Under the pieces are notes generated by a model. That model ran no database searches. It was not told the DNA's origin and worked only from the letters and a program-made list of their open reading frames with translations. The position numbers were made by a program, and so were the translations under genes. From contig NC_043025.1 in assembly GCF_006345805.1 (NCBI RefSeq), positions 1,798,001 through 1,862,000 of the forward strand: a stretch of 64,000 bases of DNA. Direction: 5' to 3'. Source of the DNA: Octopus sinensis (Eukaryota). Positions 29,556 to 46,653 of the stretch are shown in pieces; positions within the stretch are counted from its first letter, which is position 1, and every line of letters begins with the position of its first letter.

Positions 29556-29647
29556 CTCTGCTTCTGGACAGCTTCTCATATTTGTATCATTACAGATAAT
29601 TCCTGAACATGTTTGACACTGTAAATTCCGTTGATACAACGAGTAGT
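29556..29647 (-). CDS. LU cassette unit 1, exon A (92 bp, phase 1 to 0)
   Basis: Acceptor acttgtattctgtag| and donor GAG|gtaaac. Encodes YSLYQRNLQCQTCSGIICNDTNMRSCPEAE. Confidence 0.86.
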
Positions 29648-30394
29648 CTACAGAATACAAGTAAATATCTGTAGTTATGAACCAAATAATGCAATGCATA
29701 GCAATAACAAGAAATATTTTCTTTATGGTGTAAAAAAAAATGTATACGTGTTAGTATTGAAATCAATACATGTTAGACATATAAAGCAAATTATTAACAA
29801 AGACTATAAACCTATTTTTATGTTCATTTGGAAATGTTTCAATAAAGTCACAAATTCAATTGAGAGAAGCATGAAAGCCACTTGTTGTCCTTTTAGTATT
29901 CTGATGTAACAAACACGTGAAAATCGTTGAACAAGTCAAATAAAAGGATGAAATTTGTAAGTTGCAACCATTGATGCAGTGGAAACTCCCTAATGAAACC
30001 TGAGAATCTCATTTAAGTTATGTTGCAATGTCATATAGAATGTGAAGAAGGCCATAAAATGTGAAGTGAGCAAAACAATATTTGGATAAACAATAAAAAA
30101 TATGATCACTAATATTGTGATTTTTCCAATATACACATATTTATGTATGTATGTAATTATGTATGTATGTATGTATGTATGTATGTATGTATGTATGCAT
30201 GTATGCATGTATTATGTATGTATGTCATTATTTACTGTTATTTCAAGATTTCTTGGCAATAGAGAAAGAGAGAATTTCTATCCTACATCTACGGCTCCTA
30301 CATTGGAATTTCAGCAACATCAGTGTTACCATTTTGGTAAACGTCATGAATTATCATGAATCCAGGTATCTCTTTTCCAATATTTGGATGGCTT

Positions 30395-30595
30395 CCAAGG
30401 CGGCAAGCTGGCAGAAACTTTAGCCGGGTGCAATGCTTAGCAGTATTTCGTCTGTCTTTACGTTCTGAGTTCAAATTCCGCCAAGGTCGACTTTGACTTT
30501 CATCCTTTTGGACTACCAGTAGCGTACTGGGGTCGATTTAATCGACTGGCCCCATTCCCCAAAATTTCGGTCCTTGTGCCTAGATTAGGAAAGAA
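30395..30595 (+). mobile_element. tRNA-derived SINE
   Basis: ggcggcaagctggcagaaac...gttctgagttcaaattccgcc (B-box-like)...gactttcatcc...tactggggtcgatttaatcgact. Paralogues at about 35290, 42720, 51760 and 61480. Confidence 0.75.
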
Positions 30596-30927
30596 TATTT
30601 AGATGGCTTCCAGTCTGCCATATCAGCTTTTTCTGTGCTACAACTTTATATTTATGCTCTCCAACGCCTTTGACTGTTTACCAAAACATTAAATTTCCCT
30701 TAATATAATGGGACATAAAATCGTTATATTTAATAACGTATATATCCATCCATCTACCATCTTCAACGCTCATTATTCCTGAGAGGGTCATGAGGACATC
30801 TGGTACCTCAGGTACCTCCTGCATAGGGTCCTATCAGAGGCAACTGCCAATACACTTACTGATTGAATTCTCAACCATGACCAAATGAGGCTATGGATAT
30901 TTTCTAGCCATCTGTTTTTGGTCTACC

Positions 30928-31718
30928 CTACATGTTTGAAAGAGAATTCCTATCCCTCAGTTAGGTTAATGCATATACCACAGTCAGGTCTTCTGCAAAT
31001 TTTTCCTGCCGGCTTCAGTGTGGTTTCGAATATACTTGAGCTTATGTTAAGAGACATTTAATAGATTTTGGTTGTCTTTTGCCCTTTATGATGGTGTACG
31101 TTTGGAGGATAAACTTCATTCTGTAATCCCTTTTTCGTAGGTGAATGTTCTGCAGGATTGTGTCGAAGGCTTCATTGTTAAGGGGGTTGTATGTGGAGAT
31201 GGATGATAGGATATTGGCTGTAAATCCTTCTTTAACTTGGGATGTCTGAGTTCGTGGATATTGAGTTGTAGGGCACATTGAAAGCCTATATCGATTAGTG
31301 ATTGTGGGTAGTTCCTGGTAAGGAGTGTATCCTTTAGTTCATGTAGCCGTGTGTCCTTGGTGTTTGTATTAGAGACTATAGTACAAATCCCTTTTGCTAG
31401 GTTGAAGGGGATATTCATTCTAGTGTGTCTGGTTTGGCATGAATTAAACAGTAGATATGGCTTCGAGTTCGTAGGCTTATCGTATGTATCTGTTTGTATT
31501 TTGATGATGAAATTCGTAAAGAGGATGTCGAGGAATTGAAGTTGGTGATGGCTATATACCATCGTAAATTGAATGTTTATATCAAGTCCATTTATAAGAG
31601 CTTGAACTCCTTTAAGTCTTTCTATACTTTCATGCCAAAGAATGATAGAAGTTGTCTTAGAAGACAAAGAAGCTATTCTTGAAGAGGATATTTAGCCCTT
31701 CTCTTATGAATTCTTTTT
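30928..31718 (-). mobile_element. PLE RT-thumb fragment carried in tandem unit 2
   Basis: ORF 31116-31667 is homologous to 25876-26427 and is truncated at the duplication junction ggtctacc|ctacatgtttgaaagag. Confidence 0.88.
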
Positions 31719-43261: not shown

Positions 43262-44051
43262 CTACATGTTTGAAAGAGAATTCCTATCCCTCAGTTAGGT
43301 TAATGCATATACCACAGTCAGGTCTTCTGCAAATTTTTCCTGCCGGCTTCAGTGTGGTTTCGAATATACTTGAGCTTATGTTAAGAGACATTTAATAGAT
43401 TTTGATTGTCTTTTGCCCTTTATGATGGTGTACGTTTGGAGGATAAACTTCATTCTGTAATCCCTTTTTCGTAGGTGAATGTTCTGCAGGATTGTGTCGA
43501 AGGCTTCATTGTTAAGGGGGTTGTATGTGGAGATGGATGATAGGATATTGGCTGTAAATCCTTCTTTAACTTGGGATGTCTGAGTTCGTGGATATTGAGT
43601 TGTAGGGCACATTGAAAGCCTATATCAATTAGTGATGGTGCGTAATTCCTGGTAAGGAGTGTATCCTTTAGTTCATGTAGCCGTGTGTCGTTGGTGTTTG
43701 TATTAGAGATTATAGTACAAATCCTTTTTGCTAGGTTGAAGGGGATATTCATTCTAGTGTGTCTGGGGGGCATGAATTAAACAGTAGATATGGCTTCGAG
43801 TTCGTAGGCTTATCGTATGTATCTGTTTGTATTTTGATGATGAATTTCGTAATGAGGATGTCGAGGAATTGAAGTTGGTGATGGCTATATTCCATCGTAA
43901 ATTGAATGTTTATATCAAGTCCATTTAGAAGAGCTTGAAATCCTTTAAGTCTTTCTATACTTTCATGCCAAAGAATGATAGAAGTTGTCTTAGAAGACAA
44001 AGAAGCTATTCTTGAAGAGGATATTTATCCCTTCTATTATGAATTCTTTTT
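43262..44051 (-). mobile_element. PLE RT-thumb fragment carried in tandem unit 4
   Basis: ORFs 43450-43773 and 43749-44000; same junction. Confidence 0.88.
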
Positions 44052-44406
44052 GATATATATATATATATATATATATATATATTATATATATATATATATA
44101 TATATATATATATATGTATATATATATATATATATATATATATATATATATATATATATATACACGTGCAAATACGTATGTGTGTGCACGACCGCATGTG
44201 CATACACACGCGCACACACATACACATATATATGTGTGTATATGTATATATATATATTATATATATATATACATACATTTACACTTGCACACACATATAT
44301 ACACATCAAAACATTTCCCTTTTATTAACTATTATACAATGTTCTTATTAACTATCAATTTGTAATAAACCTTGTGGTGTTATATTAGACAATAAATAAC
44401 ACTTAC

Positions 44407-44590
44407 CAATGAAATCATTCTTGTTACATAAGTGTCCGACGCAACAACCAGTACAAGCCGTGCTATTCGTCCGTTTATTGCATGTAATGTTATTGTTTCT
44501 CATTGCTTCAACACATTTTCTGTATGTGCTGCAGGACCTTTCAGTCTTCAGTTTAGCACCGTTCATTGATATTGAGAATCGGCATACAGG
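44407..44590 (-). CDS. LU cassette unit 4 (first in the transcript), exon B
   Basis: Acceptor tatctgttattacag| and donor gtaagt. Encodes PVCRFSISMNGAK...CCVGHLCNKNDFI. Confidence 0.88.
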
Positions 44591-46561
44591 CTGTAATAAC
44601 AGATATGAAAATTATACACTACAACCAAAATATTTATTAGTACGATTACTGCTAATTACAGCAACAACAACATAAACAAGACTACTGGGGATGTTTAACA
44701 TGCAAGAAAGCTTAATCATTGCTTTAAAATATCCAAAAGCAATAAATGAAACCGTCAAAGAGTTGCGGAATTGTTGAAAGTTAACAGCATAAGTAAACTT
44801 CTGTAAACTTTATTGCTATTTAGTATTCCAAAATCATGTTTTAAATGCTTTCGGTGTCCAAAGATCTCTGATCACATGTAGATATGGACATCGGATCACG
44901 GTCTATAGCAAAATCGCATCGCGTTGTTACCCGTCGCCAAACTGAAAATAGGTCAGATTATCCCAATAAAGATGTATGGATTCGCGAATATTTCTTCTTA
45001 CTGGAGGAATGCGCAAGAGAAATTTTTCATATAAAATTTACGAAAAATCAGGCGTGCAAACCTCACCAACAAGAGAAACTAATACGCCTTTACCCAAAAT
45101 GATAATGAAATAAAATTGTCAGATTGAACTCCTCAGTCCAAGCAAATAAAACAGAAAATACAATAAATGAACACAAGAGAAACTTCGTTTTAATTTGCGA
45201 GTATATTTTATATGACAATACGGTATATTAGTATAAAATTTGGAGAGAAAACAAGCAAGGTCTTGTAAACTTAATGAAGGACATTCTGAAAACGGAAAAT
45301 ATCAGAAATGGAGAAGAATATTTAAAGAAAAGAATCCATCACGAAAACACAATTAATAATCGCAAACACCTAACAATAATAAAAGCAATGAAAATGTAGA
45401 CATTGAAGTTAGAAATAAGATTAGCATTGCCTTAGTTTAGAATTGAAACTCGTTTCTTCTAATCACAGAAAAGTTTTAGAAAGAAAATTGGATCTCCCAA
45501 ACTGAGTGAGGATGTCATGAAGAAATAACCAATGATAGTGTCGGTAGGCTGGCGTCTTCAAAAGAGCCAATGTAGTCGGTGATTGCAAATGAATGAATCA
45601 TTAAATAAACTAACTCAGCTTCAAGAAAACAGAACGGTCTGAGATCAGAACAGACAAATAAAACAGGCAACATAATGCAGCCATGCTCTTATTTCACGCT
45701 CTATTCTCCTATATTCTCGTAGATCAATTAATGTGAAGCATTGATCTGTGACATTACCGGTGTCTTTTATTGTTTGTCTTGTGTTTCTTTCACCAATGTA
45801 CAACTGTGTATTCAGAGATATGCCTGGCAATTTTAATTTGTGTCTTAGCTGCGTTTTAAAGGTATAGGTTTTACCTTTCTGTGAAACAATATGACCCCCA
45901 CCTATTATGTTCTGGAGAGCTTATTGTACTACATGATGTGAGAGAAGATTTAATCTGTTTCGAATAGTCCATAACCTCGTATATCAAACAACCTCTTTTG
46001 CTATGGCCACCAGACGAAAGAAAACTGTCATTTGCTTCTTAACCTATTCAATCCGCTCCCTGTAATGATTTTGAGCTGGTAGGGCCAGGTTCGACTTGCA
46101 GTTACCCCTCTAAGTTTAGTGTTCCGAGATCATTCGACAAGGAACCATGATTCCAAGTTGACTTCTGACCACATACATTCATGCATCCTACTCTAAGAAC
46201 AGCTATGTTTGTCGGAGAAAGGTCACTCTAAGTTCGTGTGTTCGTTTCTTGAATAGGGATTCGAAGACAGGGTAGAACGTTGTGTCCTTGAACAAGGCAC
46301 TTCATTCCACTTTGTTCCAGTCTAATCGAGGGAAATGTGTCCCAACCTAGTGATGTTCATCTATTTCTCTCTTCAATCGTCACATCCTTCTTGTCCCATT
46401 GAGTCATGAATAAGAAGACCGATAGGGTGTGTGTATGTCTACGCAGGCACATAAAAACAAACTAGCGAAAGCATATTACAATCTATGTGGACTTAATGGC
46501 TTTCGAGTGACGGCTGTGGATATATTTTAACGGAAGGGAAGAAACTAATATTCCAGTTTAC

Positions 46562-46653
46562 CTCTGCTCCTGGACAGCTTCTCACATTTGAATCATTACA
46601 GCTAATTCCTGAACATGTTTGACACTGTAAATTCCGTTGAAATAACCAGTAGT
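46562..46653 (-). CDS. LU cassette unit 4, exon A
   Basis: Splice sites intact. Encodes YWLFQRNLQCQTCSGISCNDSNVRSCPGAE; joins LRRCT exon A|AC = Asn in frame. Confidence 0.86.

Follow-up and report, generated by a model that had tools for sequence, protein, structure and literature searches.

The tip of finger I was hypervariable among copies of a tandemly repeated Ly6/uPAR (LU)-like domain of Octopus sinensis, and it is read here, with about even confidence, as a weakly constrained loop that is shuffled by gene conversion. In the window, the whole stretch of 64,000 nucleotides that was analysed, exon A of units 2 and 3 differed from that of units 1 and 4 by 12.0–14.1%, compared with 2.2–4.1% in the introns. 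Since synonymous loop sites were elevated and loops were shared as a mosaic among copies, this gap is attributed mainly to swapped old loop alleles, with no in-place burst of replacement mutations.

Gene organization and exon map

The four units are in-frame two-exon cassettes inside a single minus-strand gene, LOC115225969. The RefSeq model (P0067), mapped by tblastn, placed all four in series on the window between the LRR/LRRCT exons and the SEA-like exons. The earlier note had treated them as paralogous units; this mapping makes them serial domain cassettes within one gene. The exons were located as follows, in the order of transcription.

About 63485–63556, minus strand: second LRR exon; further LRR exons lie past the window end
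62131–62202, minus strand: LRR exon, 72 nt (tblastn with P0005, P0006 and P0008)
53252–53409, minus strand: LRRCT (LRR C-terminal cap) exon, single copy upstream of the cassettes (RNA contig end; tblastn with P0005, P0006 and P0067)
46562–46653, minus strand: exon A of unit 4 (u4), first LU cassette in the transcript, finger I, loop ISCNDSNVRS (BLAST, translation, splice sites; in P0067)
44407–44590, minus strand: exon B of u4, fingers II–III with the CCxxxLCN end (BLAST, translation, splice sites, tblastn)
39338–39429, minus strand: exon A of u3, loop MKCTDLEVTS (BLAST, translation, splice sites; tblastn with P0067)
37184–37367, minus strand: exon B of u3 (BLAST, translation, splice sites, tblastn)
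34443–34534, minus strand: exon A of u2, loop same as u3 (BLAST, splice sites, RNA contigs)
32289–32472, minus strand: exon B of u2 (BLAST, splice sites, RNA contigs)
29556–29647, minus strand: exon A of u1, last cassette, loop IICNDTNMRS (BLAST, translation, splice sites; tblastn with P0067)
27950–28133, minus strand: exon B of u1 (BLAST, translation, splice sites)
21825–21910, minus strand: single exon that follows the cassettes and opens the SEA-like domain, GWTKSFVFRLIFKK... (tblastn with P0001 and P0067, sequence reading)
20893–20958 (approximate), minus strand: last coding exon in the RefSeq model (tblastn, P0067 residues 711–731)
34458–34493, minus strand: hypervariable patch of u2, exon A codons 14–25, Cys2–Cys4 interval (codon and column comparison, family diversity, fold model)
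29571–29606, 39353–39388 and 46577–46612, minus strand: the same codons in u1, u3 and u4

Exon A comprised 92 nt (2 nt and 30 codons) and exon B 184 nt. AG/GT splice sites flanked all eight cassette exons. The cassettes were intact: their 48 cysteines, 16 splice sites and 368-codon frame were all preserved. The donor of the LRRCT exon was in phase 1, compatible with exon A. RNA contigs were examined at positions 29500–35499. Contigs from three runs contained the A–B splice, with the exact joint 32472|34443 in u2, and u1-type exon A was almost without contig cover. Mutually exclusive use of the cassettes was considered, because these contigs held no joint between exon B of u2 and exon A of u1, and one loose end at 34534, matching the end of the LRRCT exon, tied a u2-like exon A straight to that exon. 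Single-cassette paralogues can also account for both the missing joint and the loose end.

The product of LOC115225969 is predicted to run from a signal peptide through LRRs, an LRRCT cap and four tandem Ly6/uPAR-like three-finger domains to a truncated SEA-like domain; the SEA fold was visible in a homologue model by structural search. Each three-finger domain is encoded by a frame-neutral 276-nt cassette of two exons, duplicated with its own introns at a period of ~4.9 kb. A division into small GPI-anchored Ly6 genes, with one gene for each unit, was rejected, because no unit has a signal-peptide or tail exon, a single LRRCT exon lies upstream and a single SEA exon downstream, and RefSeq joins all four cassettes. 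That the array arose when abundant repeats at the unit junction crossed over unequally was also set aside, as a plain tandem repeat reads equally well.

Model P0067 stops after the first SEA exon and is followed by an unrelated tail. GAIN/GPS and 7tm_2 were absent from this model and were not found by tblastn of window positions 1–21800, so that the GPS/7TM part by which adhesion GPCRs (class B2) are recognized is lacking in the window's gene model. Both were present in the paralogues or orthologues P0006, P0008, P0012 and P0019. Close homologues of the cassette occurred in O. sinensis, O. vulgaris and O. bimaculoides proteins with LRR, HRM, GPS and 7tm_2 domains, and with a Death domain in one. 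At least 40 copies of exon A belonged to the family, which appears to be a young octopus family that arose from LRR adhesion GPCRs.

Fold of the cassette domain

The domain is probably a Ly6/uPAR (LU)-like three-finger domain, as the earlier note had claimed; both the cysteine framework and the predicted fold of a homologue support this assignment. All four cassettes shared the pattern LQCQTC...CC VGHL CN with 12 cysteines at fixed spacing, which contains the N-terminal LxCxxC and the C-terminal CCxxxxCN of the LU framework. The cysteine columns were invariant or nearly so across 24 homologues. The fold was taken from the AlphaFold model of homologue P0009 (mean pLDDT 72.5). Residues 56–143 matched the LU proteins Prod1 (Z 7.8), Lynx2 (7.7), Lypd6b (7.5), GPIHBP1 (7.4) and CD59 (6.9) and also an activin-receptor ectodomain (7.0), with Z values that were middling throughout. 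Foldseek on the homologue model gave uPAR with a probability of 0.97. With the three-domain model, Foldseek was dominated by the SEA-like part, and a wide structural search was needed for the LU match. In sequence searches with exon B alone and with P0001, Pfam UPAR_LY6_2 stayed below the cut-off (E = 0.1–0.14, 13 bits versus 31.5) and Activin_recp gave E = 1.6; overall, Pfam searches with single exons and P0001 and a PDB sequence search gave sub-threshold or chance matches only.

In the P0009 model, the variable codons 16–22 of exon A lay at the exposed tip of the first hairpin, which places the variable residues in finger I, as proposed earlier, and at its tip.

Divergence of exon A and the introns

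Codon recounts reproduced the counts in the earlier note. Exon A was identical in units 2 and 3. Unit 4 differed from them at 10 positions, all non-synonymous, and from unit 1 at seven (six non-synonymous and one synonymous). The 12 differences between unit 1 and units 2 and 3 were confirmed in number, and their split, given before as 11 to 1, was 10.5 non-synonymous to 1.5 synonymous by the Nei–Gojobori method. Exon B of units 1, 3 and 4 was in each case 2 nt from that of unit 2, with the synonymous and non-synonymous changes as described. The loop peptides were also as quoted, every cysteine was retained, and the amino-acid changes fell mostly between Cys2 and Cys4, concentrated at the tip of finger I; the patch of codons 14–25 held 10 of the 15 variable columns.

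The claimed excess of exon A over intron divergence held for units 2 and 3 against units 1 and 4, at 3.5–5 times the intron value over about 2,000–2,600 aligned intron sites (Fisher p 1e-4 to 1e-5). As many as 8–10 exon A differences were packed into one 24-column window, compared with 5–6 in the best intron window. Between units 1 and 4 the excess was not significant (7.6% versus 4.3% in the intron, p = 0.11). The proportion of non-synonymous changes was unremarkable by itself, because ~80% of sites are non-synonymous and the probability of 10 out of 10 is ~0.11. The description of only scattered intron changes applied to the immediate flanks, but not elsewhere in the intron, where divergent patches occurred, for example at unit-2 positions 33815–34163 and in a unit-1-specific cluster at 34834–34882.

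Loop diversity across the family

Family-wide nucleotide diversity (pi) was 0.166 in the loop patch versus about 0.06 in the intron. The loop window contained 16 haplotypes in 23 copies, the maximum over the entire 2.85-kb unit, and a 7-fold enrichment of multi-allelic sites. Intron windows of equal diversity occurred, and the loop ranked within the top 3–5% of windows. Private variants were 1.7 times as frequent in the loop as in the intron (p = 0.10), and those of exon B were one third of the intron value. In-frame deletions of 3 and 6 nt were found in the loop across the family.

Mosaic loops and probable gene conversion

The intron trees had the form (u1,(u4,(u2,u3))), whereas exon A paired u1 with u4, and these two units had derived loop states in common though they are not intron sisters. 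The paralogue L031 (C29:3.199 Mb) carried the loop of units 2 and 3, with 1 difference in 172 bp, while its introns were ~6% apart; against u2, the flanking markers disagreed at columns 421/424 and 625/628 and exon A was equal. Between copies L033 and L036, only two columns out of 2,850 were different; they lay in the loop, and each variant also occurred in other copies. The genealogy of short tracts was thus in conflict with that of the flanks, and variants were common to distinct copies, as in concerted evolution. From this incongruence between loop segments and introns, we infer that short-tract gene conversion carries loop segments between copies. The alternative named in the earlier note, that one conversion tract from a distant paralogue explains the differences, holds in part, as short-tract loop sharing was seen between L031 and units 2 and 3 and between units 1 and 4.

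dN/dS and codon site models

Exon A and exon B were analysed as separate partitions, and full-length work used database proteins. The loop dN/dS, expected from the earlier note to exceed 1, was 0.54–0.91 with 19–23 family copies and never significantly above 1. Minimum-mutation counts gave 7 synonymous changes at 7.6 sites and 17 non-synonymous changes at 28.4 sites (omega 0.64), and both were raised over the 0.294 per site of the intron (p = 0.008 and p = 0.006, respectively). With 23 distinct sequences omega was 0.54. Synonymous loop sites evolved at 3.2 times the intron rate and about 10 times the rate of the remaining coding sequence. In a maximum likelihood partition model the neutral rate of the loop was 1.8 times that of the intron and about 5 times that of exon B (p = 2e-4), with omega values of 0.91 for the loop and 0.72, indistinguishable from 1, for exon B.

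Model M2a was preferred over M1a on the intron tree (p = 3e-10), with codons 17, 20 and 22 at a posterior of about 1. The preference was reduced with a loop-specific synonymous rate (p = 4e-4) and on the exon A+B coding tree (p = 6e-4), controls in which codons 17 and 22 were flagged, and was lost on the tree of exon A itself (p = 0.36). Codon site tests yield false positives under recombination, and this fading from the intron tree to the exon A tree is the behaviour expected if recombination inflates the test.

Origin of the loop diversity

With weak constraint and conversion, the domain scaffold and the nearby intron would stay alike across the family, the finger I tip (about exon A codons 16–25) would gather synonymous changes, non-synonymous changes and in-frame deletions alike, and short conversion tracts would ferry variants of the loop from one cassette or paralogue to another. 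This reading is strained by a loop diversity of 2–3 times the intron mean, because a neutral loop in a conversion-homogenized family should not exceed the intron. The success of M2a in both controls and the ~13 non-synonymous versus 2 synonymous derived changes in the window's own clade also count against it. The earlier note had proposed diversifying selection on a binding loop, by which the finger I tip contacts a ligand, new residues are favoured and copies are kept different despite homogenizing conversion. This explanation is possible but on balance doubtful. It agrees with the exon A excess in the window, the haplotype maximum, the enrichment of multi-allelic sites, the codons flagged by M2a, which occupy the exposed hairpin tip, and an N-glycosylation sequon that was gained and lost in the loop between copies. 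In contrast, the loop omega did not exceed 1 and synonymous sites were equally raised, the test on exon A's own tree was negative, the counts in the window were inside neutral expectation, and equally diverse intron windows exist. Published work points both ways as well: branch-level positive selection is described for the octopus adhesion-GPCR group, but the same study found no site with a BEB value above 95% (PMC6408891). The present tests did not discriminate between adaptive selection and weak constraint with loop-segment copying. A joint peak of silent and replacement divergence in homogenized duplicates is reportedly also predicted by selection against homogenization in the models of Innan and Teshima.

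The raised synonymous rate could also come from a local hotspot, in which the 30 bp that code for the loop would accumulate mutations and indels at a higher rate than the neighbouring sequence, regardless of the consequences for the protein. About five indel events were found within ~10 bp, with frame-breaking ones in L028, L033/L036 and L047. A hotspot is nevertheless unlikely, because the recent, private variants were not significantly in excess, the loops were identical in three allelic pairs between the window and contig C6381, and O. vulgaris proteins and O. sinensis have loop alleles in common. Indels of one or two bases may stem from errors in long-read assembly, and inspection of the loop sequences revealed neither a repeat nor a hairpin. 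Decay of a dying four-cassette copy without GAIN/7TM, with loop differences due to neutral drift, is very improbable. The truncated RefSeq model with its unrelated tail, frameshifts or stops in 9 of 27 close family copies, the exon B omega and the sparse RNA cover of u1-type exon A would fit it, but the cysteines, splice sites and frame of the cassettes are intact, private variants are depleted in exon B, and drift cannot surpass the intron rate or cluster in 24 bp.

Implications

Several families of cell-surface receptors have expanded in octopuses. In one of them a hypervariable, glycan-switching loop is now placed at a three-finger tip, and the three-finger domain is multiplied within a gene in the form of a two-exon, frame-neutral cassette. 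Strong positive selection would be called here by a standard codon site test, perhaps owing to recombination, which calls for care when young gene families that undergo conversion are scanned for selection. We infer that the finger I loop contacts a ligand, and exon A codons 16–24 provide a concrete residue set for testing ligand specificity. Selection on the loop, if confirmed, would support an octopus-specific diversified recognition system. A wider proposal, tentative and rather unlikely, is that the LRR/LU family forms a germline-encoded, fast-diversifying, octopus-specific recognition repertoire, with the LRR concave residues and the LU finger I tip as binding faces that selection keeps different while conversion homogenizes the remainder, and with tandem LU cassettes that give in-protein valency or serve as donors of loop variants. 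If true, it would be the cephalopod equivalent of a variable receptor family like the FREPs of snails.

Comparison with known systems

The LOC115225969 family is related to the published octopus-specific expansion of LRR adhesion GPCRs. In the passages on this 'group 3' expansion, Ritschard et al. (2019) describe clustered genes with branch-level positive selection and list LRR, HRM, GPS, 7tm_2 and Death domains, as in the cassette homologues, and an LU-like domain or tandem cassettes are not mentioned there (PMC6408891). The window's gene model differs from that group by the lack of a GPS or 7TM part. Mollusc and arthropod GPCR-like ectodomains with LU domains were described in Acta Naturae (2026); that paper places LU N-terminal to a 7TM/GPS receptor in molluscs, with LRR and GPS among the drawn architectures, and contains no occurrence of Octopus or cephalopods, and its passages on these proteins give no description of a tandem cassette array, a hypervariable finger I or gene conversion (PMC13719153).

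The octopus loop belongs to a receptor-type ectodomain and not to a secreted toxin, and its dN/dS is not clearly above 1, unlike that of toxin families. Snake three-finger toxins and conopeptides show accelerated exon evolution and segment switching, in which surface loops outpace introns and scaffold while cysteines are retained. In conopeptides, the variable part also has elevated synonymous rates.

The cassettes have a three-finger fold that begins with LxCxxC and closes with CCxxxLCN, in common with the multi-LU proteins uPAR and C4.4A and the single-LU proteins CD59, Lynx and Prod1. The octopus domain differs from the uPAR/CD59 type in having 12 cysteines rather than 8–10, in lacking a GPI signal and in its position between LRRCT and SEA; by analogy with CD59, an extra disulfide would be expected in finger I. 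In vertebrate uPAR-type genes two exons encode each LU domain, and the octopus LU domains, likewise arranged in series, are each encoded by two exons.

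Organization of the cassette array

A repeat search revealed four direct units (u1–u4) with a period of ~4.9 kb, spanning ~25.7–47.7 kb of the window and encoded on the minus strand. Each unit was composed of an exon A (92 nt) and an exon B (184 nt), all with AG/GT borders. Exon A started and exon B ended in phase 1; therefore, the resulting cassette of 276 nt (92 codons) was frame-neutral. The units described in the earlier note were recovered with both exons, but they were cassettes of one gene, LOC115225969, rather than paralogous genes. A 537-bp intron segment (32547–33083 in u2) was present in u2–u4 and missing from u1, and likewise from the family copies L035, L037, and L043/L044.

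Exons of LOC115225969 in the window
21825–21910, minus: SEA-start exon, single, downstream of the cassettes, reached via the O. bimaculoides homologue P0001
27950–28133, minus: exon B of u1
29556–29647, minus: exon A of u1
32289–32472, minus: exon B of u2
34443–34534, minus: exon A of u2
37184–37367, minus: exon B of u3
39338–39429, minus: exon A of u3
44407–44590, minus: exon B of u4
46562–46653, minus: exon A of u4
53252–53409, minus: LRRCT exon, from the loose end of an RNA contig
62131–62202 and ~63485–63556, minus: LRR exons, confirmed in this analysis

A full scan of protein representatives showed that the cassette was one domain of large proteins, in the order signal peptide, LRRNT, LRRs, LRRCT, LU-like domain, SEA-like, HRM, GAIN/GPS, and 7tm_2, with an additional Death domain in one large cassette-bearing protein. 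The RefSeq protein XP_036370679.1 of LOC115225969 (P0067, 731 residues) mapped onto the window through the LRRCT exon, u4, u3, u2, and u1 in series, the SEA-start exon, and a short terminal exon near 20.9 kb. The GAIN and 7TM parts were absent from this gene model. A 100-N assembly gap (20141–20240) follows directly after the annotated last exon, and the absence could come from the assembly and need not mean that the gene is truncated.

The RNA contigs were compared over 29500–35499. The splice from exon A to exon B was confirmed exactly in three runs (joint 32472|34443), and the loose end past exon A corresponded to the end of the LRRCT exon at 53252, which had a GT donor. This exon occurred once in the window and, elsewhere in the genome, once per copy, ~4.8 kb upstream of exon A. 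A joint between exon B of u2 and exon A of u1 was not seen in the RNA contigs, but exon A of the u1 type was nearly without cover; the contigs speak neither for nor against the splicing of each exon B to the next exon A in the series model.

An unplaced contig of 44,231 bp (C6381) contained a reverse-oriented second copy of the window locus with the same spacing and 96–100% identity (loci L021, L022, L025, L026, and L029), and is probably the other haplotype. A partial model on this contig (P0042) had the same cassette series, and RefSeq treats the locus as a distinct, partial gene ('protein slit-like').

Several other elements were located in the window. Segments 4890–5310 and 10796–11200 matched the C-terminal tail of P0006, an O. 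vulgaris gene model; the tail read like reverse transcriptase, and the model probably extends into transposon sequence. At the unit boundaries 30432–30511 and 35327–35406, a short element with a summed depth of 4e3–8e4 in the RNA contig sets (dozens of contigs per run) looked like an abundant SINE-like repeat. Minus-strand ORFs at 25375–26202 contained a GIY-YIG-like motif (LIYALTC...C..YI.QT) as well as sequence resembling a retroelement, which suggests a remnant of a putative Penelope-like element at the downstream end of u1.

Three-finger domain and the tip of finger I

The assignment of the cassette to the LU/three-finger domain agreed with both its cysteine framework (LQCQTC...CCxxxLCN), which was of the LU type, and the fold of a homologue, P0009, whose AlphaFold model was compared with solved structures. 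Among sequence models, UPAR_LY6_2 was below threshold (E about 0.1). Residues 56–143 of P0009 matched exclusively LU/three-finger proteins, namely Prod1 (Z 7.8), Lynx2 (Z 7.7), Lypd6b (Z 7.5), GPIHBP1 (Z 7.4), and CD59 (Z 6.9), and Foldseek matched the P0009 model to uPAR with a probability of 0.97. Residues 144–258 matched SEA domains, with Z up to 8.5. The cassette domain is therefore predicted to be three-finger/LU-like and, in the same model, codons 16–22 of exon A correspond to the putative loop that connects both strands of the first hairpin and makes up the tip of finger I. An N-x-S/T sequon at codons 19–21 (29583–29591 in u1) was present in u1 (NDT) and u4 (NDS) and missing from u2 and u3 (TDL). 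Across the family it was gained and lost (NKS, NES, NHS, and NIS versus NDL and NEV).

Divergence among units and family copies

The units were aligned with MAFFT. The counts of the earlier note were reproduced: exon A of u4 differed from the identical exon A of u2 and u3 at 10 nucleotides, all non-synonymous (10:0); u1 differed from u2/u3 at 12 (10.5 non-synonymous and 1.5 synonymous by Nei–Gojobori) and from u4 at seven (six and one). Exon B of u1, u3, and u4 each differed from u2 at 2 nt, and all cysteines were retained. The excess of exon A over intron divergence was also borne out, with u2/u3 differing from u1/u4 by 12–14% in exon A and 2.2–4.1% in the intron (2,000–2,600 sites; Fisher p 1e-4 to 1e-5). 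Eight to 10 of the exon A differences fell inside one 24-column window, compared with 5–6 in the best intron window. Between u1 and u4, the excess over the intron was not significant. The non-synonymous to synonymous split alone was within neutral expectation, because ~80% of sites are non-synonymous.

Exon A and its flanks occurred in at least 40 copies on several chromosomes and unplaced contigs, and 35 were retrieved. Across the unit, 27 copies were 92–100% identical to u2; frameshifts or stops occurred in nine of these, and assembly errors may account for some of them. In L027, L030, L033, L036, and L047, exon B was 183 nt long, with a common 1-nt loss close to its 3' end, which could be either a genuine shared frameshift or an artefact of long-read assembly. 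A second array of three cassettes (L028, L027, and L035) was located ~250 kb away in inverted orientation (C29:2,082,855–2,100,310), and its first cassette had a 1-nt gap in the loop.

Codons 1–13 of exon A were nearly invariant, even where the introns of a copy were only ~80% identical. The loop (codons ~14–25, between Cys2 and Cys4) was distinct in almost every lineage, with in-frame deletions of 3 and 6 nt that were also visible in the RNA contigs. The intron ~10–165 nt upstream of exon A (alignment columns 340–494) was almost unchanging over 23 copies, with pi of 0.003–0.01 in two 50-column bins against an intron mean of ~0.06, pointing to a conserved splicing element or a focus of homogenisation.

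Selection tests on the loop

Family-wide pi was 0.166 in the loop window, about 0.06 in the intron, 0.024 in exon B, and 0.003–0.03 immediately upstream; two intron windows had values similar to the loop. In tree-free minimum-mutation counts over 19 intact copies, the loop had seven synonymous events over 7.6 sites and 17 non-synonymous events over 28.4 sites. Both classes exceeded the intron (0.294 events per site; p=0.008 and p=0.006), with a ratio of 0.64 and a piN/piS of 0.78. Among 23 distinct sequences, omega was 0.54 in both the loop and the remainder of exon A, and the loop was three times faster at synonymous and non-synonymous sites alike. The codon tests rested wholly on O. sinensis paralogues.

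Maximum-likelihood partition model on the intron tree (neutral rate relative to intron; omega)
Loop: 1.8x; 0.91 (p=0.71 against 1)
Rest of exon A: 0.32x; 1.05
Exon B: 0.38x; 0.72

An equal neutral rate in the loop and exon B was rejected (p=2e-4).

Site models M1a versus M2a, relative branch lengths fixed, one topology per run (2dlnL; p; codons)
Intron tree: 43.9; 3e-10; 17, 20, 22 (omega about 15)
Intron tree, loop-specific synonymous rate: 15.9; 4e-4; 17, 20, 22 plus others
Exons A+B tree: 14.8; 6e-4; 17, 22
Exon A-alone tree: 2.1; 0.36; none above 0.95 (codon 17 at 0.91)

Loop omega (0.54–0.91) was thus not above 1, although some site-model settings were significant. The signal weakened as exon A was given its own history, where power also drops with only 30 codons.

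Probable gene conversion and origin of the loop diversity

Trees of three intron segments concurred in placing u4 near u2/u3 and u1 as an outlier with L035 as its neighbour. Unlike these trees, exon A had derived states at eight sites common to u1 and u4. The same loop occurred in u2, u3, L027, L028, and L031 (C29:3.199 Mb), with one difference in 172 bp, despite introns of L031 that were ~6% different from the u2 group; L031 was set apart from this group by flanking markers, 80 bp on the upstream and 26 bp on the downstream side. Over 2,850 aligned columns, L033 and L036 differed at only two, which lay in the loop, and other copies had each of these variants. Private loop variants had only 1.7 times the intron density (p=0.10), and most loop alleles were common to O. 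sinensis and O. vulgaris proteins. This conversion-type sharing, the few private variants, and the cross-species alleles therefore indicate that the excess is mostly old shared variation moved around, not a stream of new mutations.

With evenly balanced confidence, we favour a reading in which the tip of finger I would be under the weakest constraint within a domain whose other parts evolve in concert, short conversion tracts would shuffle loop variants among copies, and the 10:0 pattern would be a swap of old alleles. The short tracts at odds with intron history partly fit the single-conversion alternative raised by the earlier note, but diversifying selection on a binding loop, its own proposal, remains a serious rival, if a somewhat less probable one. 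Selection is favoured by loop diversity above the intron mean, by a haplotype number higher in the loop than anywhere else in the unit, and by two controlled site tests that stayed significant. Selection against homogenisation would also predict a divergence peak at silent and replacement sites inside converting duplicates. Diversifying selection is opposed by the loop dN/dS and the exon A-alone test, and by a site-test signal that shrank as exon A was given its own history, as expected if recombination makes apparent repeated changes. A mutational hotspot, which is unlikely, and simple decay, which is very improbable, fit less well than either shuffled loops or selection.

Relation to known octopus receptors

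A literature search found no account of tandem LU cassettes, a hypervariable finger I, or this conversion pattern in this octopus family. A 2026 paper reported that the ectodomains of mollusc GPCRs include LU domains (PMC13719153). The family matches the octopus-specific adhesion-GPCR expansion of Ritschard et al. (PMC6408891), who reported selection at branch level and no selected sites.
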